Shown: positions 20,018 to 63,639, counted from the first letter of the stretch. The stretch: DNA of 64,000 nt from Octopus sinensis (GCF_006345805.1 NW_021832228.1:1-64000), one strand, 5' to 3'. Notes: generated from the sequence alone by a model not told the origin. Program-made: numbers and translations.

Positions 20018-20318
20018 GTTAGTTTTATTTAAAATTTATTATTACAATAATGCGGTAAATTTAAGTAATGCGAATATATATTGATTGATTTTCAAAGTCT
20101 TTGATCTAGTTTTATGATTTTTATATGAAATGAATGTCATTTAGACAATTTTGTATTAATTTATCATGATAGATCGCGATAATACCCGGATATCAACACT
20201 TATTACAATACGTTTTAATTTATTTAGGTATAAAATTCGGGAGAATCTCTAATAAAAATAGAAAAAAAGAAGATATCAAAAAAACAATTTTTTTTGGCGC
20301 ACTTTTGATTTTTTTTTG

Positions 20319-22744
20319 GGTACTGTTGCATTTCATCCTGCACGAAAATATCCTCTAAATCAGGGGTCGGCAGGATTTTTGTCTTCGCGGGCCAAAATTT
20401 TATTTTTGTATGCGATCCGGGCCAAACGGGAAAAAATCCTTATCGGTCACAAAAATAAGGCAACGTTTGCACATTGCGATCTTTCTTTATCAAGTTTTTT
20501 TTTGCAACTTTCTTACGAAATAAAAATTCATCAGTTAAAAATGATTATAAAGAAGTGAATTTATTTTACTCATTAATCTGACTAGTTTCTAAACGTAATA
20601 TATCGTTAAGATGTGAATCGGTAATCCTCGTTCTCAGACAATTTTTTACATTATTCATTTTAGAGAATAATTGTTCACATAAAAATGTGCTTCCAAATAT
20701 ACAAGCCATTTTCATAGCATTGTCGGTTAATTGCGGATATTTTCTGACACATACAAAATTTTTGTAGAAGCTCAAAATATCCATTTCAAAAAAATATTTT
20801 GATTTAAGTGTACTGTCGCATTGAATTTTAAGTAATTCCATTTGATAACACCCTGGTACTGTCTCAGTTTCAACATCAAATGAGATTGAAAAAATGTTGA
20901 AAAGATTTTTATGAGCCTAAAAAATTATATATGCGCATTTTATTCTTAAATCCATAAAACGTGATGAAAATTCTGATCTCAATTCCATAACTATGTTTGC
21001 ATATTCCGGAACATCAGTCGGATTCGTAGAAAGAAAATTCACAAAATGCGTCATGTTTCCTTTTTGTAACTGTAATTCCCACAACTTCAATTTATTTTCA
21101 AAAGCAGTGATTTCGGCATACATTTAAGGTATAAATTTATTACTTCCCTGCAGTTTCAAATTTAAGTCATTTAGATGTGAAGTTATGTCTACAAAAAATG
21201 CCAATTTGAAAATATCAGTATTTCGGAAATATGAAGCATCATAATTCTTTTCTTCAAGAAAAATTATAAAATCTTCCCGTATATGAAAAAACCTTTTGAG
21301 CATTGATCCTCTACTAAGCCATCTGACATTACAAAAATATAAAAGATCCTCATATTCTGCTTCAGTGTCGATTAAAAATTGCCTGAACTGCCGATGATTC
21401 AAGCCGCGGGATAAAATAAAATTTACTGCATTAAAAACAGCATTTATTGTCTCACGTAACCTGACTGATTTGACAACTAACGCCTCTTGATGAACAATAC
21501 AGTGAATCTTAACCAAATTGTGCTCAATTCCAAATTTTTCCATTTCATTTTGGAGTAATGTAATAGTTCCCTTTTTTTTCCCAACCATAGATGGAGCCCC
21601 GTCTGTTGTAATTCTTTACTAAATTTGTCGGCGGGCCAAATTCCCTTAGTATTATAAAATTTGTTTGCGGGCCATTTTTAAATCTTTCTGGGCCTAATTT
21701 GGCCCGCGGGCCGCGATTTGCCGACCCCTGCTCTAAATGAATTAATGAAAATTTTTATGAATATTAGATCAAAAATTTAAAAAATTGAACTATGCCGATT
21801 TTGTAAATTTTATTCTAATTTTTTTTTAAAAAAATTTGAATTTTTAAGCTGCTTAGTGGTGTCAAAACAATGCCGACAAAATTAAATCTGAGCTATTAAC
21901 GACCACCTATCTAAAAAGACACAGTTGTTGGTTAATAAAGATGCTTATCATCATTCCCTCAGTGAAAAAATCTTTATTACAATAAAAAAGGTCAGCTAGT
22001 AGTACGAAGCGTGATATTCGGCGGATAAAATTTGACGATGACATCTATTAGCTCATCGAAGGAGTTGTCTGAATGGATCACTTGCCTTCTCCATAAAAAT
22101 TTTATAAATGTATCAGGAGTATTTAATACCTGCAAAATATGCACCCATGAAGTGACGCGGGGTCCCCCTTTGTCTCTTATTGCGCCATTTTGCGCACCCC
22201 CACATTCTATATTTTCATATATAATTATTATCTGAACCTCTCAACATTCTGTGTATGTGCACCTGTGCTCGGATCTACAAAAAAATACTGTGTCTGTCGA
22301 AACTCCACATGTACATAAAGCGAATACATGACTGTAAGGTCACTTTCGTGCCTTCGAGCCACGTACCTAAAAATAAAGTACTCTCTTATACCGTTTCTAA
22401 TAGAACTATATGTTCGACACCCACTTTTATAGCACACCCATGTTGTATTCTCCTGCTGTTGGAGAAGGGTCATAAAATGTCTGTTTTGACATTTTTTTTC
22501 TTTGAAAAAAATTCCAACCTCTTGAAGGAAGGCAACTGACTTCATTTCAAGTACGGGGAAGTTCATAGTCCTTCAGTTTTGCAAATTTTCGCATGACAAC
22601 TGTATCATTTTTTTAAAAAAAATTAGAATAAAATTTACAAAATCGGCATAGTTCAATTTTTTAAATTTTCGATTTAATATTCATAAAAATTTGCATTAAT
22701 TCATTTAGAAACTATTTTCGTGCAGGATAAAATGCAACAGTACC
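20319..22744 (-). mobile_element. Merlin-like element with nested hAT (20361-21730) (copy 3)
   Basis: Inverted copy of 6871-9296; hAT TSD reads CTCTAAAT on this strand. Confidence 0.9.
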
Positions 22745-22986
22745 TTTTTTGTATTTAGTAATGTTTGTTTTTTAATATAAAATCTTTTTTATTTTCCTTT
22801 TAACAGAAGTTAATTTATGGAATTAATTTGGACACCTTCCATCGGCGTGGAAGCATACGATTGTTCGAATGATTCCAAAATCTGGTAAATCGACATTCCT
22901 GGCACAGAACTACCGGCCAATTAGCCTCATTTGTGCTTTCTCTAAGACAATGGAAAAGATTGTCTTTAACAGACTCTCTGGTCATA

Positions 22987-23720
22987 TAGTTAGTTAGTTA
23001 GTTAGTTATGTTACCCTGGCTTCACTAACACGTAGGAAGCCGGCTGCAATCAGGTAGCGAGACGCGAAGATCGGGCGCTCCCAGAGATCCCGAATCCCAA
23101 TAGGCGGAGACAAATGAGGCGGTCCAGGACAGGGGAAAAGGTCTTCAGGGGTGAAGGAACGGTATGTTTCGAAAATCAGTGGATGATGTCCCGAGCGAAT
23201 CTGAGCAAGCTGGACACGGAGATATCTGCCGAGTGATTGCTCTGAGGAGTGGACCGGCGGGGGGGGGGAGAGTTGAGAAGTTTGTTGTTTTTGAGCATCC
23301 TGATAGCACGAGTGGAGATGTGGTCATGGATTAGTTTATTCGCAGTTTTCCCGTTGTTGGTTGAGAGTATTTTTGAAAGACATCTACATTGATTGGCCAG
23401 AGTAGAAATGATGTGTCTTTTGTTTTCTGGAATAGAGATTTTGTGACTTGGATGAGAAGAATCTTGTATTTCCTGTAGGAATTGGAGTCCTTTCATCGTC
23501 AGATGGTCATCGACCGGAAGGATACAGGACTCCCAATGGAGATGATCGATGGGAGTGGATGCAAGGCAGCCAGTTATTGTGCGTAGCTCTGAGTTTTGGA
23601 TTCTTTGGAGTTTTTGGAGGTTTGAATGAGACAAGTTCCATGACCATGCTGGACTAGCATAGTTCATAGATGTTCTGACAAATTGTTTGTAAACCAAAGT
23701 GAGGCATTCTTTGGCTTGGA
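22987..23720 (-). mobile_element. 5'-truncated Ingi/Vingi-like LINE 3' portion
   Basis: [17 protein letters not shown]...IQNSELRTITGCLASTPIDHLHWESCILP parallels VYKQYIRPVLSYASPSW...IQNKAMRIISGCLKSTPIDHLHCETNLLP at ~50.2 kb. (TAAC)n tail. Confidence 0.85.
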
Positions 23721-24400
23721 ACACCGTGTCGCTTGCCTCCGTGCAGGTCGCTGTGAAGGCAGCGGTGTCTGGTTAAAGGCTCTCCCTTTCCCTTCCATCG
23801 GGAACCTGTTGGACAAGGAATGCCTAAGAATTGCAATCTCCCTTCGTGTCGGGCTGAAAATCTGCCAGACGCACAAATGCCGTTGTGGGGGAACTGTTGA
23901 CGAGTACGGTTTGCATCCCCTCGCTTGCCGGCGGAGTGCCGGTCGTGCCCCCCGTCACAGTGAACTCAACTCAGTCATACAGAGAGCCCTCGCTTTAGCG
24001 GGCATCCCGTCAATCCTTGAACCTGTTTGATTGGATAGAGGGGATGGCAAACGCCCTGACGGCATGTCCACCTTCCCCTACGAGCAGGGGAAATCCCTTA
24101 TTTGGGAATCTACCTGTTCGGACACGTTCTCGCTGGGAAATCTCGCTCTGTCCGCCGCCAATCCTGGGCACGCTTCGAGGCAGGCCGAGGAGCGAAAGAT
24201 TCTCAAGTACAGCCACCTCTTCAACTCGCTGTTCTTTACTCCAATTGCCGTGGAGTCCTCCGGGATCTTCGGCCCCAAAACACTCCGCTTCCTTCACTCG
24301 CAAGGACTAGCCACGATCCAAGAGAGTTTTCTTGGCTCCTGGAACGTCTGTCGATTGCTGTGATTTGAGGGAACGGCTTCGCCATTCGCGAGGAATATTT
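23720..24400 (+). pseudogene. CRE-clade element, 3' RLE portion
   Basis: [46 protein letters not shown]...[37 protein letters not shown]...KYSHL...AVESSGIFGP. Confidence 0.88.
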
Positions 24401-24926: not shown

Positions 24927-26645
24927 ATTGCTATTGAAATGTTTATTTTCTATGTAACAAACTCGTCACTAGATTAAAAGGGGAGAGAAGAGCCAAACGA
25001 AACCAAGGAGACGGAAGAAAACGAGTTTGTTTGCTGATTGGGGTCAACTCTAATGGGACACCAGATGTCCCTTCGATAAAAATAACGACCCCTTGCACCA
25101 CTATTTATTTAAGTGATGCAACAGTTTTTCAATGGATCGTACCGATCCCTCCAGCTCTGGAGTTAGTTTGGATTTTAAGTCCAAGCCATGTGCCAGTTTA
25201 ATGGCATATCTCCGCGTTTTCTCCAAAAGATCAATATGTTTCTTTCCTTCGCAGCTTCCGAACCATCCTTGAGATCCATAGATCAGGAAGGGTTCTATAC
25301 ACGCAGAGTATACGTATAAGAACGTTTCCGGTTTCAGCTGGAATCGCATCAGAGCTTTCAACATTTGGGTAGCCTTGTTCTTTCTCTTCCTTATATACAT
25401 CTTGAATGAACCAGTTGCATCCACAACTATTCCAAGGTATTTAAGATCATCCACGGGTTTTATCGCTCCGGTGTTAATACAAACATCAGGTTTCCTTCTC
25501 CTTTTACCAATCCAGCAAACAGTGCTTTTTTCAAAAGATAAAGACAAGCCTTTATCCTGGCACCATTTGCCAATTTTTTCGATATGACTGTGGGTTCTTT
25601 TCCACGATATTGATTTGCTCATAGAGAAATCCATAATTAAAATATCATCTGCGTAAATGACCATCTCCATGCTAGGGAGATCCACTTGAGGGATGTCGCA
25701 CATCACACAGTTAAATAAAAGGCCCGCTTTCTAAGAGAGCGGGCATTGATCAGGGTTATCCTGATTACTTCTGATTTTTTTTGGTGGCTGATCCCTTTTC
25801 TTAGAATCGCCACCAAATCCAGTAAAAGCTTCGTATCCTTTTTTGTTTTCGTTACTTCTATAATGCTTTTTTCTAATTTCTCCAAATTTTGTGAGTAATT
25901 GTGCTGAGATTTTATTTTTGTCCTCTTCTGCAGGTTCTTCTGTCTGCGTAGTAGCATTTTCTGCCTTCTTTTCGACCGCTGCAGTATTCCAACTAATCCG
26001 TCCATTTAGAAAATCAAGTTTAGCTTTCTTTGGAATATTATTATTTCCTAATCTGGCAGGTTCTTTATCTTCTTTATGTGAGATTCTTGGCTTCTTCACA
26101 AATTTCTTCATCTTCTCACGACGAGCTTCTAATGCTTTCGGACAGCCTCCATAATTTGCCAGATGTGTAGTCGATCCACAATTAACACATTTTCTCAAAT
26201 CACATGGTTCTTTACATTCCGATTTTTCCAAGTTCTTGCAAAACCGAGCAATGTGTCCAAACTGCTGACAACGAAAACATTGAATTTCTCGTTTTATGAA
26301 CCATTCTGCCTTTATCTTTAAAAATCCAATAATCAATCCCAATCTGATTATGGATTCTGCTTCTCCCCTGCTTGTTAAAACAAGAAATTTTGTTTTGAGA
26401 AAATCTCTTAATTCATCCATCTCTATCCATGTCGGAACATTTTTTAGAATAATAGAGGAAGGAGGAAGCTTAACTTCCGCCCCCTCATGTCCACCTTGTC
26501 CAAAGGGACTACTAACCTCCAAAGATTGTTTGAACTCTTCAAGGTCGTCCAAATTCTTAAACTGCAGAATAAAATCGCCAGTATGCCGTCGAGAAATCCT
26601 CGCTCCTGGATGGCCCGCCCTCATGATCGGGACAGACCAAAGCAG
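24927..26645 (-). mobile_element. Internally deleted Jockey/I-group LINE (intact ORF1, ORF2 mostly deleted)
   Basis: 13-bp TSD AAATACCTGAGCT (24914-24926, 26646-26658). ORF2 start ITLINARSL is joined directly to the late RT segment VIYADD...KYLG. AATAAA near the 3' end. Confidence 0.9.
25731..26624 (-). CDS. LINE ORF1 gag-like protein with CCHC knuckles (297 aa)
   Basis: CFRCQQFGHIARFC and CVNCGSTTHLANYGGC; N-terminus similar to ORF1 at 35611-36651. Confidence 0.85.
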   Translation of the reverse strand: MRAGHPGARISRRHTGDFILQFKNLDDLEEFKQSLEVSSPFGQGGHEGAEVKLPPSSIILKNVPTWIEMDELRDFLKTKFLVLTSRGEAESIIRLGLIIGFLKIKAEWFIKREIQCFRCQQFGHIARFCKNLEKSECKEPCDLRKCVNCGSTTHLANYGGCPKALEARREKMKKFVKKPRISHKEDKEPARLGNNNIPKKAKLDFLNGRISWNTAAVEKKAENATTQTEEPAEEDKNKISAQLLTKFGEIRKKHYRSNENKKGYEAFTGFGGDSKKRDQPPKKIRSNQDNPDQCPLS

Positions 26646-29399: not shown

Positions 29400-31472
29400 C
29401 AGGGTTGTTAAAAATCATGATTTTTTTCAAAAAAATCAAAAAAATCTGATTTTTTTGATTTAATCACGATTTTTTTGATTTAAATCAGATTTTTTTGAAT
29501 TAAATGATCTTTATTTCAAAACGACCCTTTCCACCTGGCTTATCAGAGAACCTCTCTCTTTGTACATAAACACTGAAAAACGGCCACGCAGAACGATCTA
29601 TCGTAGTTCCTTATGTCCACCGGGATCACTTAACTAGTTTGCATTACGCTTTCTTTCTTTGTGGTCTTCGGGTTAATAAATAAAAAAATATTTCAAAGCG
29701 AACTAAAATAAAAAACAAAAACAATGGAAATCGTTTTTATTTATTTAAAAGCTTGTAAATGGAAACAAGTTTGGCTGCTTTTTCGATCCCCAGCCTATTG
29801 CGTACATTTGAATGTAGAAATCCGAATGTTGAAAAGATTCTTTCTATTCCACCTGTCGAAGCAACTGCTCCAAGAATTTTTTTGCATAGTGAAATTACTT
29901 GTGAAGGTAACTGGTATGAATTCGACTCCCACCAAGCTATAGGTGATACTTTACTCAATAAATTCGGAGCAAACATGTATTGTTTAAATGGATCAGCTTT
30001 TGCTCTGAAATTAATCAGAGTCGGAAGTGCATATTCATAATTTTGAGCACAATAACTCAATGCAATGTCAATCTCAACATTTGAAAGAGATTTCCCACTA
30101 CATGTCGGGTCGATCAAATTCGCAAGTAAGTGGAAAGGTGTTAATGCTTGTTTTGCTCAAATTCTCACTTTTCCTAAAATATTCGTACATCCATTGTCAA
30201 TATATGTCTGTTCAAGTTCTTTCCAAATTTCTACAGCATGACTAATCGTGGTAGAATCATTCTGAATTTTATCTAAAGCGACAGCAATTGGTTTAATAAG
30301 CATCAGATATTCTTCAACGCGTCGTTTTAGGGAAATATTTTGGACCTTGGAAAAAATCTCTGTATCAATATCCGTTCTGTGTTCCTCACAAGTTCTCAAA
30401 ATAATAGACCAATTATCCAGATAAGATTGAAAACAGTCTGATAAAGTGTTCCACCGTACATCAATCGGAAGAACGAGTTTTTTTCCTCCAGCAGATTTGT
30501 ACCATGCAGCTGGAAGATGGACGTTTCGGAAATATTTATTGATTGTTACAATAGTTCCTTTAACGTCCGCTACCTCGACATCCTTCGCAAGAAGGTTGAG
30601 ATAATGTGCCGAGCAACCATAAGTAATTATTTCATTGCCATCTTCCATCATTATCCGTCTCATTTTAGTCATGTTGGCAGCATTATCCGTTACAAGACTG
30701 CCGATTTTACATCCAAACCGTTGTTCAGCCAATTGTGCGGAGGCTAAAGCAACAGATTGAAGATATTCCGCAGTGTGGCTATATCCAGAAGTGTCCACAG
30801 TGTCAATGAGATAATTTTCCCCATCTGATGTCACAACCGAGACACAAATAACGGGTTCATTATGAATGTTGCTCCACCCGTCCAACATCATAGACACTGT
30901 TTTGTCCTGGAGTCTTTGTCGACAGTCTTCATGTATTTGGTCGTACACATGATCAAGTAATGTACCACCAATTTGATGACGAGAGGGTAAACGATACCCA
31001 GGAAGAAGCATTTGGACGAATTTGACAAATTCGGGATGTTCTACAGCAGCAAACGGAGTGTTTGTAGAAAATATGTATCTAGCGAGTTGCAGATCCATCA
31101 AATCTTTCTTAGATGAAGTCGTCGTAGTTACGAAATTGATTAATGAATGGTCCTTCATCCTTGGAGGAAATTCGCTTTCAGGTCTCGGCATATTTTCAGG
31201 GATATCAATATTACTTCGACATAATAAATGATGCTGCCTCATCCGAGATACAAGACCTTGTATGTCCTTCCCACAATTACGACATCTGGCACGGCTTCCG
31301 GTCTTTCCAGGAATAATACGTTTATCAAAATAAGCCCACAAAGAATCACGCTTTCTTCCAGGCATTTAAAAAAATTTAAATGATTTTTTTGATTTTTTTG
31401 ATTTTTTTAATGATTTAAATCATTGATTTTTATTGTTGATTAAAATCAAATGATTTAAATCTAACAACCCTG
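29400..31472 (-). mobile_element. hAT (Ac/BED-finger) transposon, nearly intact
   Basis: TIR CAGGGTTGTTA...TAACAACCCTG; 8-bp TSD GTAAAAAT. ORF 31365-29737 has a BED finger (LWAYF...CRNC...H), DGWSN, CSAHYLNL, RWN and ERIFS, broken by one in-frame TGA at ~30157. Subterminal GATTTTTTT repeats. Confidence 0.95.
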
Positions 31473-33037: not shown

Positions 33038-35635
33038 TCATGTTTGACGACAATTTTCCAAGACCATCCGGATCGTGGGCACAGAGGATTCTTGTGAGTC
33101 TTTTAACCTTCCGTCAAGTTGTACTCCGTAAGCCAATTTCATAGCGAAACGTCTTGTCTTTTTCAACTGTTCGATCAGGTAGTCACTCTCCTCCGTACCG
33201 TACCAGCCCTCGTAGCCATATGTGAGGACTGGCTGCACACACGTTTTGTATACGTAAATGTACGTTTCCGGATCCAGATGGAACCTGGTTAAGCTTTTGA
33301 GGATCCTCACACTCCTCTTTCTCTGATTTGCTATATGCTCTACGTACGAGCCACGACAGTTGATGGTTGCTCCCAGGTAAGAAAGATTTTTGCTTTTCGG
33401 GAGATCCATCACATAGCTACTCATCGCATATGCACACGACTCTGCATAGCGACTCCCTCGCCGCAACCATGAAATGGTGCTCTTCTCCGGTGCTAGGGTC
33501 AAACCTTTCTCTATAGTCCACATCTTTAGCGTTGCAATGTATGATTTCAGTCGTCTCCAAGACTGCGATATCCTTTTCGAGGTATCCATGACCAGGATAT
33601 CGTCAGCATAGATAACGAGCTTGCCAGTACGTGTCGACGGCAGAGGAATATCCGCCAAGAAGAGGTTGAACAGAAGTGGACTCAAGATAGATCCCTGCGG
33701 GACTCCCCTTCTAAGTTCCACACACCCCGATAGGCGGTTTCCACAGCGGACAAATGATTGTCTTCCTGACAAGAAGCTCTCCAGCCATCGATAGGTCTTT
33801 ATCCCGGCTCCGATGTCATGGATTCTGGAGAGTAGGCCCAGGTGCCACACGCTATCAAACGCTTTGGCCAGGTCCAGACACACCACAGTTAGCCATGCTT
33901 CATTTCTGTCAGCACGGGATAATTGGTGCTCTAACTCCCTGAGGCAGTCCCCTGTGGATCTTCCTCCACGAAATCCCCATTGTTCGGGTAAAAGCAAATT
34001 TTGTGATTCTATATGACCAGAGAGTCTGTTAAAGACAATCTTTTCCATTGTCTTAGAGAAAGCACAAATGAGGCTAATTGGCCGGTAGTTCTGTGCCAGC
34101 AGTGTCGATTTACCAGATTTTGGAATCATTCGAACAATCGTATGCTTCCACGCCGATGGAAGGTGTCCGAACGCCCAGCTGGCGTGAAACAACATAGTCA
34201 ATGCTCGTATCAAGATTTCAGGGGCCTTCTTTAACAACTTCGGAGGGATGTAGTCGAAGCCAGGCGCCTTGTTCTTCAACCCAGCAATTGCCCTTTCAAC
34301 CTCTTCCTGTGTTATCTCCCCACATAATGGTCCCTCCGATAATTGCGAAGAGCCAAGCTTCTTCACAATTCGGTCATAAGTCCCTCGTGGAACGGTGGAT
34401 TCGACCTCTTGAACCTGACTAAGTTGGTTCCTGAGTACCTCCGGGATACGATCAGAGGAGATATATTTCCCGTCTGCTTCTTTTAGTGAAATTTCAAATC
34501 CTTTGGCATCATTTCTGGTAAGGCGTTGATATGCTTTCCAGAAATTAGGGTTTCGCTTATCCAGTTTTCGGCATTCAGACCTCCATTTACTTTCGACCTC
34601 AGTCTTGGCCATTTTTGCAATAGTAGATTTTATCTTGTCGATCTCCAATTTCAGGCGGCATTTGATTGACTCAACCCGACATCTTCTCCTGCGATTTTCC
34701 AGGGTACCTTTCGTTCTGATCAGAGTGACAAGTGTCGAATTCATCCGCTTTTGCGTTCCTTTGGGTTTCCATACATTTTTTAATGCATAAACATCCAGGA
34801 ATTTTACGATTGACGATCTAAGGTGATCATCGAGATTGTCAATATCATCTCTGCTTCTCAGAGGCTGGGACACGACATTTCGAAGAGAATCCCGCATATA
34901 TGATTCGAATAAACTCCAGTTCATGTTCACGAGGTTGTAACCAATGAACAAGTCCTCCGTAACATTCATAGTCATCTTTATCAACATCGTTTGCGGCACG
35001 TGGTCAGAGCCAATGTCCGCTTCCAACCTCGGTATGTAACATAAAGGACTAATTGATGCCGAGCATAGAAAGAGACCCAAGCGATCAGCCCTGCCTCTGT
35101 CTGCATAATGATTCAGTTCTTCCGATGTAAAGACCGAAAAACCCAAGCTACTGGCCAAGTCCTCAAGGACAGTTCCATCCATATTCGTAGTTTCACATCC
35201 ATAACTCACATTTTTGGCATTAAGATCTCCTGCTAGGATTGACAGGCAATTTTCCTCAAAGAACGTCCCAATAACGTTTGAATAGCGCCTTAGCGACTTT
35301 GAATACATTCCCCCGACGGTTAGCCAGCCAGCGGTCGTGTGCAGCTCGAGCACAATAAGTTCACAGAGTGACTCCTCCACAATTCTGATGTTTCTTACCT
35401 TAAGGTTCGCCCTGTAGTAGACTGAGGTTCCTGTCCCCGCCACTGAGTTTATTTTCCATGGTATATTAATAGACTTATAGCCTTCGAATTCCACCCTCGT
35501 AGCTTCCTTCAGCTTAGTCTCATTGATAATCAATATGTGAGACTTCGCTGTGGCCAGCAGGAGCCTCAGCTCCGATACCCGTCTCGCAAGCGAGCGGGCA
35601 TTTAGAATTGTCAGAGCAAGGAATCCTTCCGACAT
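33038..35635 (-). CDS. LINE ORF2: APE endonuclease + reverse transcriptase (865 aa)
   Basis: LNARSL, INETKL, GDLNAK, SDHVP; YRPISL, DLAKAFDSV, GVPQGSILSPLLF, YADD, YLG. Confidence 0.97.
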   Translation of the reverse strand: MSEGFLALTILNARSLARRVSELRLLLATAKSHILIINETKLKEATRVEFEGYKSINIPWKINSVAGTGTSVYYRANLKVRNIRIVEESLCELIVLELHTTAGWLTVGGMYSKSLRRYSNVIGTFFEENCLSILAGDLNAKNVSYGCETTNMDGTVLEDLASSLGFSVFTSEELNHYADRGRADRLGLFLCSASISPLCYIPRLEADIGSDHVPQTMLIKMTMNVTEDLFIGYNLVNMNWSLFESYMRDSLRNVVSQPLRSRDDIDNLDDHLRSSIVKFLDVYALKNVWKPKGTQKRMNSTLVTLIRTKGTLENRRRRCRVESIKCRLKLEIDKIKSTIAKMAKTEVESKWRSECRKLDKRNPNFWKAYQRLTRNDAKGFEISLKEADGKYISSDRIPEVLRNQLSQVQEVESTVPRGTYDRIVKKLGSSQLSEGPLCGEITQEEVERAIAGLKNKAPGFDYIPPKLLKKAPEILIRALTMLFHASWAFGHLPSAWKHTIVRMIPKSGKSTLLAQNYRPISLICAFSKTMEKIVFNRLSGHIESQNLLLPEQWGFRGGRSTGDCLRELEHQLSRADRNEAWLTVVCLDLAKAFDSVWHLGLLSRIHDIGAGIKTYRWLESFLSGRQSFVRCGNRLSGCVELRRGVPQGSILSPLLFNLFLADIPLPSTRTGKLVIYADDILVMDTSKRISQSWRRLKSYIATLKMWTIEKGLTLAPEKSTISWLRRGSRYAESCAYAMSSYVMDLPKSKNLSYLGATINCRGSYVEHIANQRKRSVRILKSLTRFHLDPETYIYVYKTCVQPVLTYGYEGWYGTEESDYLIEQLKKTRRFAMKLAYGVQLDGRLKDSQESSVPTIRMVLENCRQT

Positions 35636-36651
35636 GGGTGGCTGACCTCCCGTGGGAGCGCCACCTTTTTCGGTAAAGGGGGTCTGCCTGCTTTCCGTTT
35701 GCCACCGGTTTCAGCCGGCTCTGGAGGCGTCCCATCGTCCTCCAGCCGGGCTTCGGGGCTTGGCAGCTGAGCTCCAGATTTTGCTACTGCAGTTTTCTTC
35801 ACTGCTCTCGCCTTCGGGGCGGCGGGTTTTGTTTCTGGGCATGGGTCCGTTTGAATTCCTGTGTTAATGAAGCAGGTCTGACTTCCGGATTCGATCAAGT
35901 TCTTGACGATAACGTCAGTTTGAACACCAATATCGCATTTCGGATTAAGTAACTTCTTCGACCAAGACATTTGTATGCCAGACATTTGTATTGCATTTAC
36001 ACGATTTCTCTTAGTGGGAGTCACTTCCAGTTTCTTCTTTGTCGATTGTTTCGCCACCGGACAGCCCAACCAGTTCGCCCGGTGTCCATGTGATCCGCAG
36101 TTGATGCACGGGAGTTTGGCGTGTGTTCCGATCGTACATTGGGTGCGATCGTGTGCATCACCACACAACAAACAGCGCACTGTCTCCTTACAGTATAACG
36201 AGATGTGTCCAAATTTGTAACATCGATAGCATTGCCTCTCGGGATTTTTGTACCAGGTAAAACGGATTTGGTTGAAGCCAATTTTAAGACCTAGGGTGAT
36301 CAACGACTGTGCTTCGTTTCTGTCCTGGATAGTAAGCTTGCCAAGTGGCAGATATTTCCCATTTTTACTAAATCTCTCCAGTTTGAACCCTGGAGATAGC
36401 ACTTTCGACAAAAGCCTGTGTAAATCCTCGTTATCAACCCAAAAAGGTAGATTCCTCATCATTAAGGTCGAATCCCTGGGTGTTCGGTGCTCTATTGTGT
36501 GCCCATTGTCACCAAAAGGAAGCTTCATTTCCCAATCGTTTTTAAAAGACTCGAAATCCATTTCCGAATTGAAGACAAGTTCGTATGAGCCATCAAAGCG
36601 ACGGGAGATTCTCGCCTTGAGGGCAGTTTTTGAAAAACTATTTTGTTGCAT
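35611..36651 (-). CDS. LINE ORF1 gag-like protein, three Cys/His knuckles (346 aa)
   Basis: CYRCYKFGHISLYC, CLLCGDAHDRTQC, CINCGSHGHRANWLGC. Confidence 0.93.
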   Translation of the reverse strand: MQQNSFSKTALKARISRRFDGSYELVFNSEMDFESFKNDWEMKLPFGDNGHTIEHRTPRDSTLMMRNLPFWVDNEDLHRLLSKVLSPGFKLERFSKNGKYLPLGKLTIQDRNEAQSLITLGLKIGFNQIRFTWYKNPERQCYRCYKFGHISLYCKETVRCLLCGDAHDRTQCTIGTHAKLPCINCGSHGHRANWLGCPVAKQSTKKKLEVTPTKRNRVNAIQMSGIQMSWSKKLLNPKCDIGVQTDVIVKNLIESGSQTCFINTGIQTDPCPETKPAAPKARAVKKTAVAKSGAQLPSPEARLEDDGTPPEPAETGGKRKAGRPPLPKKVALPREVSHPCRKDSLL

Positions 36652-42086: not shown

Positions 42087-45000
42087 CAGTTCTCCACGTG
42101 TGTGATATCAATCAAGCTCATTTTTTCAGGGGTTAGTTTTAAATATTTTTCGATAATATGCGCTTTTTACAGCTCGTCTAAAACCTTTTTATCTACTCTA
42201 TTCTTGCGTTTTAAAATTTTTAACAAGATTTGCGTAATTATAAAGATCCATACTCAGTTCTCCACGTGTGTGATATCAATCGAGCTCGTTTTTTTCAGGG
42301 GATCAGTTTTAAATATTTCTCGATAATATGCGCTTTTTATAGCTCGTCGAGAACCTTTTTATCTACTCTATTCTTGCGTTTTAAAATTTTCGACATGATT
42401 TGCGTAATTATAAAGATCCATACTCAGTTCTCCACGTGTGTGATATCAATCGAGCTCGTTTTTTCAGGGGATCAGTTTTAAATATTTTTCGATAATATGC
42501 GCTTTTTATAGCTCGTCGAAAACCTTTTTATCTACTCTATTCTTGCGTTTTAAAATTTTCGACATGATTTGCGTAATTATAAAGATCCATACTCAGTTCT
42601 CCATGTGTGTGATATCAATCGAGCTCGTTTTTTCAGGGGATCAGTTTTAAATATTTTTCGATAATATGCGCTTTTTAAAGCTCGTCTAAAACCTTTTTAT
42701 CTACTCTATTCTTGCGTTTTAAAATTTTCGACATGATTTGCGTAATTATAAAGATCCATACTCAGTTCTCCACGTGTGTGATATCAATCGAGCTCGTTTT
42801 TTTCAGGGGATCAGTTTTAAATATTTCTCGATAATATGCGCTTTTTATAGCTCGTCGAGAACCTTTTTATCTACTCTATTCTTGCGTTTTAAAATTTTCG
42901 ACATGATTTGCGTAATTATAAAAATCCATACTCAGTTCTCCACGTGTGTGATATCAATCAAGCTCATTTTTTCAGGGGTTAGTTTTAAATATTTTTCGAT
43001 AATATGCGCTTTTTACAGCTCGTCTAAAACCTTTTTATCTACTCTATTCTTGCGTTTTAAAATTTTTAACAAGATTTGCGTAATTATAAAGATTTATACC
43101 CAGTTCTCCACGTGTGTGATATCAATCGAGCTCATTTATTCAGGCGTCAGTTTTAAATATTTTTCGATAATATGCGCTTTTTACAGCTCGTCTAAAACCT
43201 TTTTATCTACTCTATTCTTGCGTTTTAAAATTTTTAACAAGATTTGCGTAATTATAAAGATTCATACCCAGTTCTCCACGTGTGTGATATCAATCGAGCT
43301 CATTTATTCAGGCGTCAGTTTTAAATATTTTTCGATAATAGGCGCTTTTTATAGCTCGTCGAAAACCTTTTTATCTACTCTATTCTTGCGTTTTAAAATT
43401 TTCGACATGATTTGCGTAATTATAAAGATCCATACTCAGTTCTTCACGTGTGTGATATCAATCAAGCTCATTTTTTCAGGGGTTAGTTTTAAATATTTTT
43501 CGATAATATGCGCTTTTTACAGCTCGTCTAAAACCTTTTTATCTACTCTATTCTTGCGTTTTAAAATTTTTAACAAGATTTGCGTAATTATAAAGATTCA
43601 TACCCAGTTCTCCACGTGTGTGATATCAATCGAGCTCATTTATTCAGGCGTCAGTTTTAAATATTTTTCGATAATATGCGCTTTTTATAGCTCGTCGAAA
43701 ACCTTTTTATCTACTCTATTCTTGCGTTTTAAAATTTTTAACAAGATTTGCGTAATTATAAAGATTCATACCCAGTTCTCCACGTGTGTGATATCAATCG
43801 AGCTCATTTATTCAGGCGTCAGTTTTAAATATTTTTCGATAATATGCGCTTTTTATAGCTCGTCAAAAACCTTTTTATCTACTCTATTCTTGCGTTTTAA
43901 AATTTTCGACATGATTTGCGTAATTATAAAGATCCATACTCAGTTCTCCACGTGTGTGATATCAATCAAGCTCATTTTTTCAGGGGTTAGTTTTAAATAT
44001 TTTTCGATAATATGCGCTTTTTACAGCTCGTCTAAAACCTTTTTATCTACTCTATTCTTGCGTTTTAAAATTTTTAACAAGATTTGCGTAATTATAAAGA
44101 TTCATACCCAGTTCTCCACGTGTGTGATATCAATCGAGCTCATTTATTCAGGCGTCAGTTTTAAATATTTTTCGATATATGCGCTTTTTATAGCTCGTCG
44201 AAAACCTTTTTATCTACTATATTCTTGCGTTTTAAAATTTTCGACATGATTTGCGTAATTATAAAGATCCATACTCAGTCTCCACGTGTGTGATATCAAT
44301 CAAGCTCATTTTTTCAGGGGTTAGTTTTAAATATTTTTCGATATTGCGCTTTTTACAGCTCGTCTAAAACCTTTTTATCTACTCTATTCTTGCGTTTTAA
44401 AATTTTTGACAAGATTTGCGTAATTATAAAGATTCATACCCAGTTCTCCACGTGTGTGATATCAATCGAGCTCATTATTCAGGCGTCAGTTTTAAATATT
44501 TTTCGATAATATGCGCTTTTTACAGCTCGTCTAAAACCTTTTTATCTACTCTATTCTTGCGTTTTAAAATTTTTAACAAGATTTGCGATTATAAAGATTC
44601 ATACCCAGTTCTCACGTGTGTGATATCAATCGAGGCTCATTTATTCAGGCGTCAGTTTTAAATATTTTTCGATAATATGCGCTTTTTATAGCTCGTCGAA
44701 AACCTTTTTATCTACTCTATTCTTGCGTTTTAAAATTTTCGACATGATTTGCGTAATTATAAAGATCCATACTCAGTCTCCACGTGTGTGATATCAATCA
44801 AGCTCATTTTTTCAGGGGTTAGTTTTAAATATTTTTCGATAATATGCGCTTTTTACAGCTCGTCTAAAACCTTTTTATCTACTCTATTCTTGCGTTTTAA
44901 AATTTTTAACAAGATTTGCGTAATTATAAAGATTCATACCCAGTTCTCCACGTGTGTGATATCAATCGAGCTCATTTATTCAGGCGTCAGTTTTAAATAT

Positions 45001-45243
45001 TTTTCGATAATATGCGCTTTTTATAGCTCGTCGAAAACCTTTTTATCTACTCTATTCTTGCGTTTTAAAATTTTCGACATGATTTGCGTAATTATAAAGA
45101 TCCATACTCAGTTCTCCACGTGTGTGATATCAATCAAGCTCATTTTTTCAGGGGTTAGTTTTAAATATTTTTCGATAATATGCGCTTTTTATAGCTCGTC
45201 TAAAACCTTTTTATCTACTCTATTCTTGCGTTTTAAAATTTTC
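42087..45243 (+). repeat. 168-bp tandem satellite (19 monomers)
   Basis: Period 168 (e.g. 43101, 43269, 43437, 43605, 43773, 43941); three monomer variants. Confidence 0.98.
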
Positions 45244-45750
45244 TCGTGCCGTTGAGTGTCCTCCATGTATGGTAGATTGTAGAGGAGCATCTTCAGGCCG
45301 AACAAGACGAAATAGACAAGTATAATCAGTTGCTTAGCAATCTTTTATAACTGGTGTGTTTTTCATTAAGTTTTTGAATTGTTTAGTTCATACAATATTG
45401 AATGGACCTAGTTGGCCGGTTTGTTGTGGTTTGATTGAGTTTGTAAACATATGTTTGCAGTATGAAGAGGAAGACTTGTACTGATAAGTGCATGTAGGGG
45501 GAAATGCACATTACTCAAATTGAGGGATTAACTATATTGAAGTGTTCAAAGCGATCAAGAAATACTAGAGGGTGTTTGAGCATCCAGATTCCTCAGTTAG
45601 GAGTCAACTCGGACTTGTCTTAACGCATAGAAAATCCATGTTTTTTCTTGATGCTGCTCTCGACTGTCCTCACAGGGGAAAAGTCCTTCCAACTCGTTTT
45701 AGTATGTCGAATCGTTTTTTAATGCAAATTTCAACTTTATAAATAATAAA

Positions 45751-47325: not shown

Positions 47326-47780
47326 CGCATTTTGCATTTTGGAAGCCGGGAGTTCTTGGTTACCGTAGCTCTTCACTATATTCTGATGGTCCATTAGGGT
47401 TGCAATTTTTTTCTCCGTAGCTTCAACCCAGTTAGAATTAGTCCTCATTGCGAAATCTCGTCAATTCTTCTATGGGGAGTTGTTGTTGTTGTTGCATAAC
47501 CCCGGTCTCACATTAAAGTATGAGTGATCTTCGGCACAGCAGAGGTTGCATACCGGGGAGATCACGGCGTTCAATGAGTGAGCGTAGGAGTTTAGTGAGT
47601 GGTGGTGGCCCGAGCGGAAACGAGCAAGGTTGATCTGAGCGGAACGCTCCAGAAGCATTTCGGAGGGGTGAACTTCCGGAGGAAGTTTGTTGAGGACAGA
47701 GTTAGGCTTCAGCCTTAGAATGGACGACGTTGAAATGAAGTCATGGATTTTTTTCATTGGCTGTGAACATTGGTTTAGGC

Positions 47781-49948
47781 CAGACGTCACCAAACTACGG
47801 CCCGCGGGCCGGATCCGGCCCGCGACAACATTTTATCCGGCCCGCGCACTATTTCGAGATATTCAATTAATACCTTAATAATTAACTTAAATAAAAACTT
47901 TAATTAAAAAATTAAACTATTTTGCAAGATTTAATTCGAAAAAAACTTATCAGCATTAACGTTAAATTTTTCTTTGTTGCTATGTCTAATATGAAAAGAA
48001 AGGTTGACCGCGAATGCCGTGTATTCAATAAATTATGGGAATTGAAGTATTTTTTTGCGAAAGATGAATTAAAGCAGAAAGCTTATTGTTTAATATGCCA
48101 CGAACATCTCTCTGTTATGAAGGAGTATAACATTCGACGTAATTATGAAACGAATCATGCTCCGATATATTCCAAGTACACTGGAAAGCTACGTGAGGAT
48201 AAAGTTGAATCACTGAAACGCACTTTACAAATTCAACAAGGCCTTATAAAAAAAAATTTTGAAAATAATAAAAATGTAACAAGAGCTGGATACGAGATAA
48301 CGAAAATTATTTCACAACACGGGAAACCCTTCAGTGATGGGATGTATATCAAAAATTGCATTATTGAAGCAGTTAATTGTTTGTGCCCACTAAATTCTTC
48401 CTTATTTGATGGAATAAGTTTGTCGGCGAGTTCTGTATCACGGAGAACTGAAGAGCTTGGAAAAAATATATATTTACAAATTTGTGAAAAGACAAGTAAT
48501 ATGTTGTGGTATTCTCTTGCATTGGATGAGTCAGTTGACATTTCGGGAACATCGCAACTTCTTATTTTTATTCGTGGAGTTGATGAGAATTTTCCATAAC
48601 TGAAGAACTGGCATCTGTTTGTTCTATTCATGGAACAACCACTGGAAAAGATATTTTTGATGAATTGGAACAAACTATAAGTGACTATAACCTTGAATGG
48701 GAGAAACTGAGTTGTGTTACGATTGACGGGGCAAAGAATATGGCTGGTTCTAAAAAGGGTCTAGTTGGGCAAATAACTAATAAATTGGAGGAATTACATA
48801 TTTCAAACACTTTGTTCATTCATTGCATCCTTCATCAGCACGCACTATGTGCGAAGGCTCTTAATATTTCATGTGTGTTGAATCCAGTTATTCGCATAAT
48901 AAACTTTGTTCGAGGGAGCTCACTTAATCACCGTCAGTTTAAAGTTTTACTTGACGATTTTGGATCTGAATATTTTGACTTACCATATTACACTGCAGTT
49001 AGATGGCTTAGCTGTGGTAATGTATTAAATAGATTTTATAAACTCCGAAGTGAGATTGATATTTTTCTAACCAGTAAAAATAACTATTATCCCGAATTAT
49101 CAGATCTTGCTTGGCTATCAAAATTATCATTTTGGTTGATGTTACAACTCACATGAATGAGCTAAATCTGAAATTACAAGGAAAGGAAAACTTAATTTGT
49201 GATTTCTACAGGATAATTAAAGCATTTCGACAAAAATTGATGTTATTCGAGTCACAACTTGGAGTACGTCAGTTTTCACACTTTTCTTTTTAAAAGTTTT
49301 TGTGAGGCAAACTGTAATGAGATCGACATTACTTTCCAAATTGGAATTATCAAAGAATTAAAACATCATTTTTTACATAAGTTTTCTGAACTTGACAAAA
49401 TTGAAAGCGATATAATTTTGTTCGAAAATCCATTTTCTTGTAATGTTGAAAATGTTCAACATGAATTACAATTAGAAGTTATTGACTTACAATCAAATGA
49501 AGAGCTCAAAGATTGTCACAGACGGACCAAACTCGCTGAGTTCTACGAATATCTCAAGCATGATGAGTTTCCGAGACTAAAGAATTTTGCGATAAAGATG
49601 ATTTCTATATTTGGCACAACTTACCAATGTGAGCAAACGTTTTCGAGGATGAAATATGTTAAGTCTGCCCATCGTGCAAGATTGACTGACGGACTCTTAA
49701 AATCAATTCTCATGATAGGATGCAGCAATTTAAAACCAAATATTGATGAACTTGTCAAAAAAAGATCACAGTTCCATAGCTCTCATTAAAATTTTTGTTT
49801 ACTTTATTTTTGTTTAAATTAGTTTTTATTGTAAAAAACACACTTATGAATTTCTAGTAAAATTATAATCCTATGCACGTGCTCCGGCCCGCGTTCATTG
49901 TGTTGGGGTCAATCCGGCCCGCGAGTGCAAAAAGTTTGGTGACCCCTG
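47781..49948 (+). mobile_element. hAT (Charlie/SPIN, GTF2IRD2-like) transposon inserted in the LINE; frameshifted transposase 47982-49789
   Basis: TIR CAGACGTCACCAAACT / AGTTTGGTGACCCCTG; 8-bp TSD GTTTAGGC. CLIC...H zinc finger, LDES, TIDGA, HCILHQHAL, VRWLS, TTYQCEQTFSRM. Confidence 0.95.
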
Positions 49949-52678
49949 GTTTAGGCCATTGATTTTGGCAAGTACCCGGGAGTATAGTTTGGCAGGCGTG
50001 TTCTTTAGTGCACGGCCGTTGTCATTTAGCGTGTTTAGGGCAGTGCAAGGGTGGTAGAGTTTTCGCGAAGCGAATAGGAATTGTGCTCCTCTTATGTTTA
50101 GATGTTCCTCAATCGGGAGGAGGTTGGTTTCACAGTGCAGATGGTCGATGGGTGTTGATTTCAGGCACCCGGATATGATGCGCATGGCTTTGTTTTGAAT
50201 TGATTGGAGAGCCACAGAGGAGCTCATAGAAAGACAGGGAGCCCAACTCGGACTCGCGTAGCTTAGGACAGGGCGAATGTATTGTTTATACACACGTTTG
50301 AGAAGTGGTTTCTGCGCACCAGTGATGTGACCACTTATTGGTTTCAGGATATTTGTACGCCTGTTAGCCTTGTCAGAGATCTTCGAGGCATGTTTGTTGA
50401 AGGACATCGTTGGGTCGAAGGTTAGTCCGAGAACAGTTGGGTGTTTTGATAGTGGGAGAACAGAGCCAAAGAGAGATAGGTTGGGATGTATGTTTGATTG
50501 TCTTCTGTCGGAAGATAATAGGGTGACCGAGAACTTGGAGGACGAGGCCTCGAGCCTGTTTTCTCTGAGCCAATTCTCAACGGAGTGGAGTTGTTGCTGA
50601 AGGTTGAAGGAGGCAGCTTTATAGTCTTCGTGTTTTGAGGCAATAATAATGTCGTCAGCGTAAGATAGTGTCAAGTTGTTAGGGTCGTTTGCCGGGAAGT
50701 CATGCAAGTAAAGATTGAACAGGGATGGAGACAGCACGGAACCCTGCGGTACCCCGTTTGGAAGATAGCGTTGTTTGGAACAATGGTCCATGAGGGAGAC
50801 GTAGCCCATGCGGCCTGATAAGAAGTTAGCAAGTCAGGATTTGTAGTTTGAGTCTAGGCCGGTCGTGAGAATTTTCTTGGTGAGACCGCAACGGGGGACG
50901 CTGTCAAAAGCTTTAGATATGTCGATGGAAGCTAGAACTGTTCGTTTAGGGGGCCTCTTCACATTGAAGCCGTCCAGGACGAATTGGGAAAGCGTTGTTA
51001 AGTGAGTGGTTGTTGAGTGCAGTGGTTTGAAGCCATGTTGGGTGTGGGATGTTGGTAAGTGCTTCGAGACTCGTGAAAGGATTAGTCTTTCGAGGATTTT
51101 AGATAGCGTGCACAAAAGAGAGATTGGGCGGTAGGAGCTTGGAATGCCAGCCGGTTTGTTCGGTTTGATTAACGGGATGATACGTGATTTTTTCCAAAGA
51201 GATGGAATTTCGTTTTTTACAACGGAATTGTTGAAAATAGACACTATAGCGTTGATTGCGTTAGGGCCAAGTCTTTTAAGGTGGTGGATAGAAATGTTGT
51301 CAGGCCCCGTGGCGGGGGAATTCTTCGAGTTTTTTATACACTGCGAAACTTCGTCTGCAGTGAAAGGCGGTAAGGATTCCGTGCGAGGTAAGCTCCTCCG
51401 AGATTTGGCGACCTTCCGATCGTTTTTGTTTGAGGTTTTGTGGCTTAAGGAGGCGTAGTAGTTCATGAGCGAGTTTGCCTCCTGAACCGGATTCAGTGGG
51501 ATGTTTGAGTTAGAAGTGGCAGATTCGTGGGACTTGGGCTTTTCATAAATCAAATCATTCATGTCCTTCAGGGTCTTCCAGATTTTGGAGCTGTTAGATC
51601 TGTAGTCGATTGAGGTGATAAATTCGGTCCACTTAGAATCTGCGTGCAGGTTAATGGCAGCGGTGATTTGTTTGTTTAGGTTAGCCAATTCAATGGAGGA
51701 CTCGGCAGAGTGCCTTGATATCTTTTTCAGTTTGTTGCGAGTCTTTATGAGGGATTTCACTTCATGGCTGTAGTTAGGGCGGAACTTTTTAATTTTTCCT
51801 TGGGGGATGAAATTTTTAGAGGTGGAAGTGATGAGAGCATTAAGGTGATTGACTGCTGCATCAGTCGAGCGAAAGCTGTTGATGTTGAAATCATTCAGAG
51901 AGTTTTCTAGGGCAAGGCGGTATTCGTCCCAGGAAGCTCTTTTGTAGTTAGTGTAACAGCGGCGTTGTAGGTCAATGTTAGATTTTAGCGCATTCTCGAT
52001 TATGATTGGGTTATGGTCACTGGTTAGGTCGTAAACCACCTTCCAGGAAGTAGCAGAGGCCAGAATGGGAGTACACAGTGAGATGTCGGGAGAAGAGATT
52101 GCGTCGCCATTTCTTGACGGGGTTTTGGTATGGGATGAGGAGTTGTTGAGGATGACTAAACCGTCAAGTTGATCAAGTAGAAGAGTTCCTCTTGAGTTGA
52201 GGCATTGATTTTTAAGCCAAATCGGGCTCTTTGCATTCATATCACCACAGATAAAGACATTACTGAGGGACTGGAGGTTTTGTATTGAAGGGGTCCAACC
52301 GTGAGGACAGGATGAACACGGAGGGATGTACATGTTGATCAGCCTTCTGGTTGAGCGCCCTGTAGAGACCGTTATAGCCGTCAGCTCAATTACAGGGTCG
52401 TTATCGATTAGTGTGTAAGCTTGTGATGTACAGTTAGAGAAAGGGATTGATTTTCTGATAAGAGTTAAAAGGCCCCCGCCATTTACGGAGTTCGGTCTGT
52501 CTCGCCGGATGTATGAGTAACCCGGGAAATCGGGCAGACGGTTTTTGGGCGAGAGCTTCGTTTCCTGCACCAAAGCAATGTCCACGTCGTACTTCTCCAT
52601 GAAGGAACAGAGTTCAGTGGTCTTGTGGGCGATCCCATTAATGTTTACTTGCAGGATACGAAGTAGGTTCTTCCTGGC

Positions 52679-52717
52679 GGGTCCAGGGTTTTGTTCGATG
52701 TCTCCGGAGAGGAGAAG
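52679..52717 (-). other. 2A-like StopGo ribosome-skipping peptide LLLSGDIEQNPG/P
   Basis: Matches the D(V/I)ExNPGP consensus, in frame immediately before the APE domain (residues 44-56 of the ORF). Confidence 0.92.
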
Positions 52718-52819
52718 GGCGAGTTGGGAGTGTAAAAGAGAGGTCCTTGGGAGCAACGGCTTCGCGCCTGCTCTGCTGCCACCGACGTCACGGAAGGTAT
52801 CCGATCCGACAGGGGGGGT

Positions 52820-52894
52820 TGTGGGTCTTTTGGTAGTTAATTCCATGAGAAACTATCATTTGCCACCACGAGAAGGTGACCCACATCGACAAAC
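52820..52894 (-). ncRNA. HDV-like self-cleaving ribozyme (predicted)
   Basis: GUUUGUC-GA-UGUGGGUC-ACC-UUCUCGU-GGU-GGCAAAU-GA-UAGUU-ucucAUGgaauu-AACUA-CCAAAA-GACCCACA. P1 7 bp with G1.U37 wobble, P2 8 bp perfect, P3 3 bp, L3 fits UYCHCGY, P1.1 G-C/A-U, P4, J4/2 C. G1 abuts the TSD. Confidence 0.88.
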
Positions 52895-63459: not shown

Positions 63460-63639
63460 CCATAATGAAAAACTGAAAATTAAATTAATTATTTTAGAAG
63501 AGTATAAAAAAGAAACCTCAAAAGAGGCACAAAAATATAAGAACCAGATAATCCCTATACACGGAAATCTTTAGTAAAAGGCAAAGATTTATACGCTTTG
63601 CATAGGAATCAGATTACCTTTAGGAAAGAAAAATTTTAT

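Follow-up and report, generated by a model that had tools for sequence, protein, structure and literature searches.

A LINE with a predicted HDV-like ribozyme and a 2A motif ahead of its endonuclease and reverse transcriptase in Octopus sinensis DNA

Layout and state of the element

The window analysed here is a 64-kb stretch of Octopus sinensis DNA, and the element under study is a long interspersed nuclear element (LINE) that is read on its minus strand, from 52894 to 47481. Its first 75 nt match the fold of the self-cleaving ribozyme of hepatitis delta virus (HDV), and its single open reading frame (ORF) opens with a short leader that ends in a 2A (StopGo) motif, followed by an endonuclease of the apurinic/apyrimidinic (APE) type and a reverse transcriptase (RT). 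This arrangement had been noticed in a sequence-only reading of the window; our analysis confirmed the observation and supported the interpretation attached to it. In our view, the locus very probably holds a dead copy of a single-ORF, APE-type LINE from a widespread clade with (CAA)n tails, whose 5' module combines an HDV-like ribozyme with a 2A/StopGo peptide. The features of the element are as follows; ribozyme nucleotide n stands at position 52895-n of the window, minus strand.

52905-52895, minus strand: 5' target-site duplication ACTCCCCATAG (CTATGGGGAGT on the plus strand), adjoining base G1 of the ribozyme
52894-52820, minus strand: predicted HDV-like self-cleaving ribozyme, 75 nt, all pairs checked, matching a strict descriptor
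52846-52844, minus strand: first in-frame AUG, in the loop of helix P4 (ribozyme nt 49-51), preceded by an in-frame UAG at nt 40-42
52846-52679, minus strand: leader M1-G55 plus Pro56, beginning MELTT, from the ORF translation
52702-52679, minus strand: 2A/StopGo motif DIEQNPGP (D49-P56), with a homologous motif in relatives
Between Gly55 (52684-52682) and Pro56 (52681-52679), minus strand: predicted skip site, NPG/P
52654-52013, minus strand: APE-type endonuclease, residues 65-278, Pfam Exo_endo_phos (3.9e-10) and Exo_endo_phos_2 (3.3e-11), with the Pfam matches covering residues 65-282
51157-50489, minus strand: RT, split by a nonsense codon, Pfam RVT_1 in two ORF pieces (1.2e-11 and 6.1e-17)
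50834-50836, minus strand: in-frame TGA (first lesion), where relatives have Trp (consensus NYKRWLANFLSGR)
49949-49956 and 47773-47780: 8-bp duplications GCCTAAAC flanking the nested hAT
47781-49948, plus strand: nested hAT DNA transposon (second lesion), 2168 bp, junctions read, with Dimer_Tnp_hAT (1.3e-06) and zf-C2H2_12
47772-47497, minus strand: C-terminal ORF segment carrying the Cys/His motif CNLCCAEDH...C, entering the tail without a stop (third lesion)
47494-47481, minus strand: (CAA)n 3' tail, sequence read directly
47480-47470, minus strand: 3' target-site duplication ACTCCCCATAG, identical to the 5' copy at 11 of 11 positions; the ORF meets its first in-frame stop, a TAG, within it

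The boundaries of the insertion are sharp. Identical 11-mers stand on both sides, the 5' one flush against G1, as the sequence-only reading had it. With a G as the opening base of the element and an A next to the 3' copy, the repeat does not extend into the element, and the 5' boundary is therefore exact. In this copy, the integrated 5' end also coincides with the end that the predicted ribozyme would generate, which had likewise been proposed. Net of the hAT, the LINE measures 3238 bp, close to the ~3.2 kb estimated earlier. The APE and RT domains that had been read by eye were recovered by Pfam (Exo_endo_phos, Exo_endo_phos_2 and RVT_1), and their presence in one ORF, together with the simple-repeat 3' tail and the target-site duplication, assigns the element to the APE-type LINEs. 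No RNase H domain was found by Pfam in any piece of the ORF, nor in the closest relatives.

The coding frame is continuous across the TGA and the hAT, giving ~1065 codons (670 + 1 + 295 + 100) with no frameshift. These two lesions were already on record as a single nonsense codon, beyond which the frame indeed continues, and one hAT insertion, whose limits are now set at 47781-49948; a third lesion, the defective 3' end, had been overlooked. The hAT carries terminal inverted repeats of 16 bp (CAGGGGTCACCAAACT and CAGACGTCACCAAACT), and its transposase is degenerate and spread over three frames, with the hAT dimerisation domain still found. As for the 3' end, the ORF has no stop inside the element, stays open across the (CAA)n tail and closes only at the TAG in the 3' duplication; ~27-43 C-terminal residues, the stop codon and the short 3' untranslated region (UTR) of relatives are missing. 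Just before the tail, the sequence (GGGGTTATG-CAACAA) is similar to that of relatives such as L090 (GAGGTTAAA-CAACAA), and because of this resemblance the authentic 3' end appears to be present. The defect is probably a deletion of ~100 nt, the other candidate being a short end specific to the family. After insertion, then, the copy gained the TGA, the hAT and, probably, the deletion near the 3' end.

The lack of any frameshift beyond these lesions and the identical duplications indicate an insertion that is young in evolutionary terms. The earlier description of the family as recently active stood in part: the identical duplications and the nearly intact ORF favour it, while the copy also lacks a stop codon and the C-terminal residues. 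These defects raise another reading, in which the ribozyme and the 2A peptide function in the family but the copy itself is aberrant, being 3'-deleted, devoid of a stop codon and mobilised in trans instead of descending from a competent master; recent activity of the family would not follow from such a copy. The frame that stays open through the tail and the loss of the residues after the Cys/His motif speak for it, as does the tally of one full-length copy and one diverged fragment in 64 kb. On the other side stand the pre-tail bases shared with relatives, the ~1065 codons open but for one TGA, and the duplications identical at all 11 positions, and we regard the aberrant copy as possible but doubtful. 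The diverged fragment belongs to a related family and lies at 40-464 (minus strand), where it is 74-80% identical to nt 742-1105 of the element (blastn); it shows no similarity 5' of element nt 742 and runs off the window edge.

The 5' fold in the window and in relatives

The genomic and antigenomic HDV ribozymes and the CPEB3 ribozyme are nested double pseudoknots with a G.U pair at the cleavage site, a 3-bp P3, a U...G pair in L3, a C-G pair in P1.1 and a C that opens J4/2. The first 75 nt of the window element share all of these features, which are arranged as follows.

Between 52895 and 52894, minus strand: predicted scission site, 5' of G1
52894-52888 with 52864-52858, minus strand: P1, GUUUGUC/GGCAAAU, nt 1-7 with nt 31-37, including the wobbles G1.U37 and U6.G32
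52885-52878 with 52827-52820, minus strand: P2, nt 10-17 (U10-C17) with nt 68-75 (G68-A75), eight Watson-Crick pairs
52877-52875 with 52867-52865, minus strand: P3, ACC/GGU, A18-C20 with G28-U30, pairs checked
52874-52868, minus strand: L3, UUCUCGU, of the HDV type U...CG
52873-52872 with 52857-52856, minus strand: P1.1, C23-G38 and U22-A39, pairs checked
52855-52851 with 52838-52834, minus strand: P4, UAGUU/AACUA, U40-U44 with A57-A61, pairs checked
52833-52828, minus strand: J4/2, CCAAAA, C-initiated

All 25 pairs of this fold were verified, in the canonical strand order of the nested double pseudoknot P1-P2-P3-P1.1-P4, and each base pair named in the sequence-only reading was present at 52894-52820. 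The nucleotides of the HDV catalytic core were also all in place: the C of J4/2, the G.U at the cleavage site, U1 together with C5 and G6 of L3, and the C-G pair of P1.1.

Could such a fold be a chance likeness in a structured, C-rich 5' UTR? We scanned the window with a strict descriptor comprising P1 (7 bp, with G1.U), P2 (7 bp or more), P3 (3 bp), P1.1 (2 bp), P4 and a C-initiated J4/2. It matched once in 128 kb (both strands), at 52894 on the minus strand, and in 300 first-order Markov shuffles it averaged 0.073 matches per 128 kb, or ~6e-7 per position. Since the strict match begins on the very base after the duplication, the fold is far beyond what chance would provide. Looser descriptors are unspecific, as a chance origin would have it: a loose HDV descriptor yielded 1.25 matches per 128 kb of random sequence and a relaxed one 165 matches in 623 kb, and for this reason they were not used as sole evidence. 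A repeat with three copies, at 22457 (plus strand), 7158 (minus strand) and 1500 (minus strand), also satisfies the loose descriptor; we set it aside as a chance match in the arms of a palindrome described below, as it starts with U and has a GU-rich P1, a 5-bp P2 and no L3 core.

To look beyond this single copy, we collected relatives of the element. An exact database look-up of the window protein returned no record, and word-indexed protein searches gave distant jockey-like matches and one close relative only. An exhaustive HMMER protein search recovered 61,751 relatives, the best of them 39-41% identical, and 48 of the best 150 carry an N-terminal motif ...LLLxGD[IV]ExNPGP. In these relatives the 2A is followed either directly by the APE domain, which is the arrangement in the window, or by a Cys-rich module. 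Their DNA was taken from ENA, Logan, NCBI and JGI assemblies, with many of the loci (labelled L001, L002 and so on) being metagenome contigs. A (CAA)n tail is common to L001, L002, L003, L006, L008, L011, L087, L090, L091 and the window element, which therefore form one coherent clade. The record of L004 is found in assembly GCA_006345805.1, which we take to be that of an octopus; this relative and the richness of the window in animal-type transposons support the label metazoan indirectly.

Upstream of the 2A, the same fold is found in six relatives (34-41% protein identity), on the sense strand and 185-259 nt ahead of the NPGP Asn codon.

L003, 351-416, sense strand: clear HDV-like fold
L007, 100-180, sense strand: clear HDV-like fold
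L008, 18-94, sense strand: clear HDV-like fold
L009, 3-100, sense strand: clear HDV-like fold
L086, 100-192, sense strand: clear HDV-like fold
L089, ~163-240, sense strand: HDV-like fold found by eye, with the second P1.1 pair imperfect

The conservation among the seven ribozymes falls where the HDV fold has its active site. Conserved across them are P3 (RCC/GGU), L3 (U-N-C-N-C-G-N) and J4/2 ((C)CAAAU/A); positions 1, 5 and 6 of L3 and the C of J4/2 with the following A-A are invariant in all seven, and the cleavage-site pair is G.U in five and G-C in two. In P1, P2, P1.1 and P4 the sequences are unrelated between members and the pairing is kept. Compared with HDV and CPEB3, the clade differs in a J4/2 of 5-6 nt and in a variable second P1.1 pair (U-A in the window). 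The length of J4/2 in the window, one nucleotide more than in HDV, had been noted; it is no anomaly, with 5-6 nt (CAAAU, CCAAAU) being normal in this clade. The contigs of L008 and L009 start 17 and 2 nt upstream of their ribozymes, as expected if assemblies break at a repeat boundary.

We next quantified the covariation in an alignment of the seven ribozymes that was registered on the structure and padded with N, plain MAFFT having misaligned the helices. Overall, 98.7% of the alignment cells were paired, a percentage that is partly so by construction, since the structure guided the alignment and a pairing descriptor had selected five of its seven members, and 17 of 24 pairs had changed on both sides. 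The covariation score was 0.863, compared with 0.238 for shuffles (reached in 0 of 500) and 0.08-0.18 for slid partners. P1, P2 and P4 covary fully in the six relatives. As the alignment was structure-fitted, we added a test on the core that is independent of pairing. The 14-nt core RCCTNCNCGNGGTG occurs seven times in 629 kb (the window excerpt and the related loci), against 0.3 expected; all seven occurrences precede the ORF on the sense strand and six of them complete the full descriptor, whereas shuffled flanks of the core complete it in at most 2 of 2000 trials each. With six independent relatives showing compensatory changes, and with P1, P2 and P4 differing throughout so that these are not near-copies, a chance likeness is effectively refuted.

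A covariance model of our own, R1, built on P1, P3 and P4, recovered its seven seeds. Its only other match below E = 0.01, in L040 (E = 0.0065), lies on the wrong strand and shows no fold by descriptor, and we took it and the other extra matches (E ~0.8 or more) as chance. Among the related loci, L011 holds a candidate divergent HDV-like fold at ~230-310, upstream of its 2A, with P1 UGGAUGU/ACAUCUA, P2 GGCAG/CUGCC, P3 GGG/CCC and P4 CCCAC/GUGGG; it starts with U and has a long J4/2 and no clear P1.1.

Several points weigh against our preferred reading of the element, and the first two of them would also suit a chance likeness. No Rfam model of the HDV type matched the window ribozyme or six related loci (cmscan, E<=10), and the pseudoknot-free minimum free energy (MFE) of the ribozyme is ordinary (z = -1.39), its MFE structure holding a competing helix of nt 27-32 with nt 59-64. 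Neither Rfam nor the pseudoknot-free MFE can score the pseudoknot; as the Rfam models are family-specific and cannot model it, the miss points to a separate sequence family rather than against the fold. P1 has 6 bp in six of the seven ribozymes, compared with 7 bp in HDV. Degenerate versions of the ribozyme occur in L001 and L004, and our scans did not find it in L002, L005, L011, L087, L088 and L091; L088 offers only 164 nt upstream of NPGP, and the contigs of L006 and L010 end short of the 5' end. The covariation alignment is partly circular for the reasons given above. No duplications were recovered around the related elements in the metagenome contigs, where their flanks are probably collapsed or chimeric, and the coincidence of duplication and cleavage site is that of a single copy. 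Finally, two out-of-frame AUGs (nt 9 and nt 36) lie upstream of the ORF's AUG.

The fold and its conservation are observed, and from the fold we infer catalysis. This leaves room for a 5' structure that is real but non-catalytic, serving as an internal promoter, an IRES-like (internal ribosome entry site) element or a site to which the element's own protein binds, with the 5' end set by transcription starting at G1, in the manner of Pr77 in L1Tc, rather than by scission. The 77 nt of L1Tc (Pr77) are both promoter and ribozyme (PMC3383444), and the start codon in or near the fold of several relatives suggests a role in translation. However, conservation falls exactly on the catalytic core of HDV (L3 U...CG, P1.1 C-G, the J4/2 C and the G.U at the site), while the helices only covary, and a promoter or protein site needs no P1/P2 pseudoknot topology. 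Such roles are, moreover, compatible with cleavage. We therefore consider a non-catalytic structure improbable, and prefer the self-cleaving ribozyme.

Translation, proposed life cycle and the rest of the window

The ORF's AUG lies inside the P4 loop, where the sequence-only reading had placed it. A start codon embedded in P4, J4/2 or P2 sets window-type ribozymes apart from those of HDV and CPEB3. Among the seven elements, it lies inside the ribozyme at nt 49 in the window, nt 58 in L003 (spanning J4/2 and the 3' strand of P2) and nt 11 in L007, and just downstream of it at nt 81 in L089 and nt 128 in L008; L009 and L086 have no start codon there, their frame being open through the ribozyme. 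This pattern suggests that translation initiation is tied to the ribozyme region rather than to scanning from a cap.

The leader proved to be as previously described, 55 residues ending in DIEQNPG/P before the endonuclease. Residues 41-56 read QLALLLSGDIEQNPG/P, a canonical D(V/I)ExNPG/P after a hydrophobic tract, and the position of the 2A, at residues 49-56, is inside the 40-80 residue range reported for 2A-bearing LINEs. A 2A motif by itself does not guarantee activity (Odon et al. 2013). The motif and its homologues in relatives make StopGo skipping at DIEQNPG/P a plausible prediction.

In eight of 15 related loci (L001, L003, L009, L011, L086, L087, L088 and L089), a run of 5-6 U is found 74-78 nt before the Asn codon of NPGP. 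It is read as [V/I/L]-Phe-x, where Phe is always TTT and the following codon is T-initial in seven of the eight, and it also occurs in L011 and L088, which have an in-frame stop a few codons upstream; the conservation may act on the protein or on the RNA. The window counterpart is only TTTT (52737-52734, at -47). The idea that a motif 'VFS...PA' is the ribozyme read as protein was rejected, as the motif sits far downstream of the ribozyme, ~75 nt ahead of the NPGP codons.

Taken together, these features suggest the following life cycle. The element RNA would arise either by co-transcription from DNA that lies upstream or from its own promoter. Its first 75 nt would fold as a double pseudoknot and cut 5' of G1, yielding an uncapped RNA with a 5'-OH that begins at nt 1. 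By analogy with the ribozymes of R2 and L1Tc, which a review describes as reported to aid cap-independent translation, initiation at the P4-loop AUG would not require a cap. At DIEQNPG/P the ribosome would skip one bond and free the 55-residue leader from the endonuclease-RT. Target-primed reverse transcription would then start on the (CAA)n tail and copy the RNA to its extreme 5' end, which would leave the duplication abutting G1, as is seen in the one copy of the window.

The rest of the window holds a variety of other repeats and one recognisable RNA gene, a U5 spliceosomal small nuclear RNA gene at 63513-63617 (minus strand). It matches Rfam RF00020 over its full length (66.1 bits, E = 7e-09), the only Rfam match above the gathering score in the window. 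A huge, near-perfect palindrome spans ~6171-23445, with its centre near 14.8 kb and more matching arms at 1447-4705. Its arms are several kb long and 99-100% identical (6815-9495 with 20120-22800, and 10019-12318 with 17295-19594), and they hold hAT-like and other transposon ORFs in mirror copies. Either a recent inverted duplication or an artefact of the assembly could account for the palindrome. Long satellite-like tandem arrays, seen as periodic peptide repeats, occupy 42738-45255 and 14131-14637 (both plus strand).

Other transposon sequences are also present. An apparently intact two-ORF LINE of another family lies at 33038-36651 (minus strand), with an ORF1 of 346 residues carrying Cys/His knuckles and an overlapping ORF2 encoding an APE-RT of 865 residues; no 2A was apparent in its listed ORF translations. 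A LINE remnant is found at 25101-26624 (minus strand). The C-terminal fragment of another LINE, at 23176-23724 (minus strand) and partly in a palindrome arm, is related to the post-RT region of the element and contains the motif ...TGCLASTPIDHLHWES... At 30157-31365 (minus strand), an ORF of 402 residues with a BED zinc finger and DUF659 resembles hAT-type transposases and is not of the same family as the hAT inside the LINE.

Comparison with known systems

The element had been called Ingi/Vingi-like. The Vingi clade, which was reportedly introduced by Kojima et al. in 2011, is of a matching size, about 3.1 kb. Vingi elements have a single ORF, with 993 residues reported, and nt 2-74 of Vingi-2_Gav (3128 bp) are kept as a block in a short interspersed nuclear element (SINE). 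Compared by published descriptions, the window element is alike in its 3238 bp, its one ORF of ~1065 codons, its lack of an ORF1 and its 75-nt 5' module. It differs in having both a ribozyme and a 2A, where published Vingi elements have no ribozyme listed and no 2A detected. Ingi/L1Tc elements are marked by an RNase H after the RT and a poly(A) tail, neither of which the window element has; with no RNase H and a tail of (CAA)n, it is unlikely to belong to Ingi/L1Tc proper. The size, the single ORF and the 75-nt module are consistent with Vingi, which fits better than Ingi, and are not defining.

Tentatively, we suggest that the window element may represent a large, undescribed eukaryotic and partly metazoan grouping of single-ORF LINEs with (CAA)n tails, in which ribozyme, nearby start codon and 2A form one conserved 5' module like that of L1Tc/Ingi. 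If so, the module would be no trypanosome peculiarity: it would go back to the origin of the whole Ingi/Vingi-type lineage, or have passed from one kingdom to another. The window element extends the L1Tc-type design of a 5' ribozyme plus a 2A from trypanosomes to a clade with at least one animal (octopus) assembly and many members from marine and other metagenomes. The ribozymes themselves make up a covariation-supported HDV-like family that is missed by current Rfam models and could serve as a good seed for a new one. They also offer a natural system for asking how an uncapped, ribozyme-processed RNA with its start codon inside the ribozyme is translated, why StopGo would shed a short leader, and whether the module explains the LINE 5' blocks that survive in SINEs. 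In annotation work, the full-length ends of such elements can be recognised by the 14-nt core together with the tail of (CAA)n.

HDV-like ribozymes at LINE 5' ends were listed in 2018 for six groups: R1, R2, R4, RTE and Ingi, as well as LOA (baggins). The ribozymes of R2, R1, R4, RTE and LOA share the proposed job of freeing the element RNA at its exact 5' end, possibly with cap-independent translation; these are, however, other LINE clades with no 2A reported, and the window clade is absent from the list. Conversely, 2A-bearing metazoan LINEs comprise Rex1, Crack, L2, L2A, CR1 and, in Aplysia, Ingi-1_AC (Odon et al. 2013). These resemble the window element in having the 2A 40-80 residues in, usually in a single ORF, before an APE or a Cys-rich (PHD-like) module, both of which occur among our relatives, but Odon et al. 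mention no ribozyme for them, whereas the window element has the fold. In the literature searched, 2A-like sequences, ribozymes and non-LTR (non-long terminal repeat) elements came together only in a T. cruzi review, and an earlier description of some members of the clade is possible.

The closest architectural counterpart is L1Tc, for which the combination of a 5' HDV-like ribozyme and a 2A has been described. In both L1Tc/Ingi and the window element, the ribozyme makes up the first ~75-77 nt, from nt +1 beside the target-site duplication, and a single ORF runs from an N-terminal 2A straight into the APE domain and on to the RT. The P3-L3-P3' core of LmSIDER2A, a related trypanosomatid element, ACC UCAUCGU GGU, is nearly the same as ACC UUCUCGU GGU in the window, a likeness that general constraints on HDV folds could explain. 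The differences are equally clear: L1Tc has an RNase H, a C-terminal nucleic-acid-binding domain and a poly(A) tail, where the window element lacks RNase H and ends in (CAA)n; P1.1 is a single base pair in L1TcRz and two in the window; and trypanosomatid Pr77 elements, in the published supplement, start with C, whereas the window ribozyme starts with the G of its G.U pair. The two are likened by architecture, with L1Tc residing in a kinetoplastid. Each component is thus already known, and the window element shows the architecture of L1Tc in a clade with an animal (octopus) assembly among its sources.

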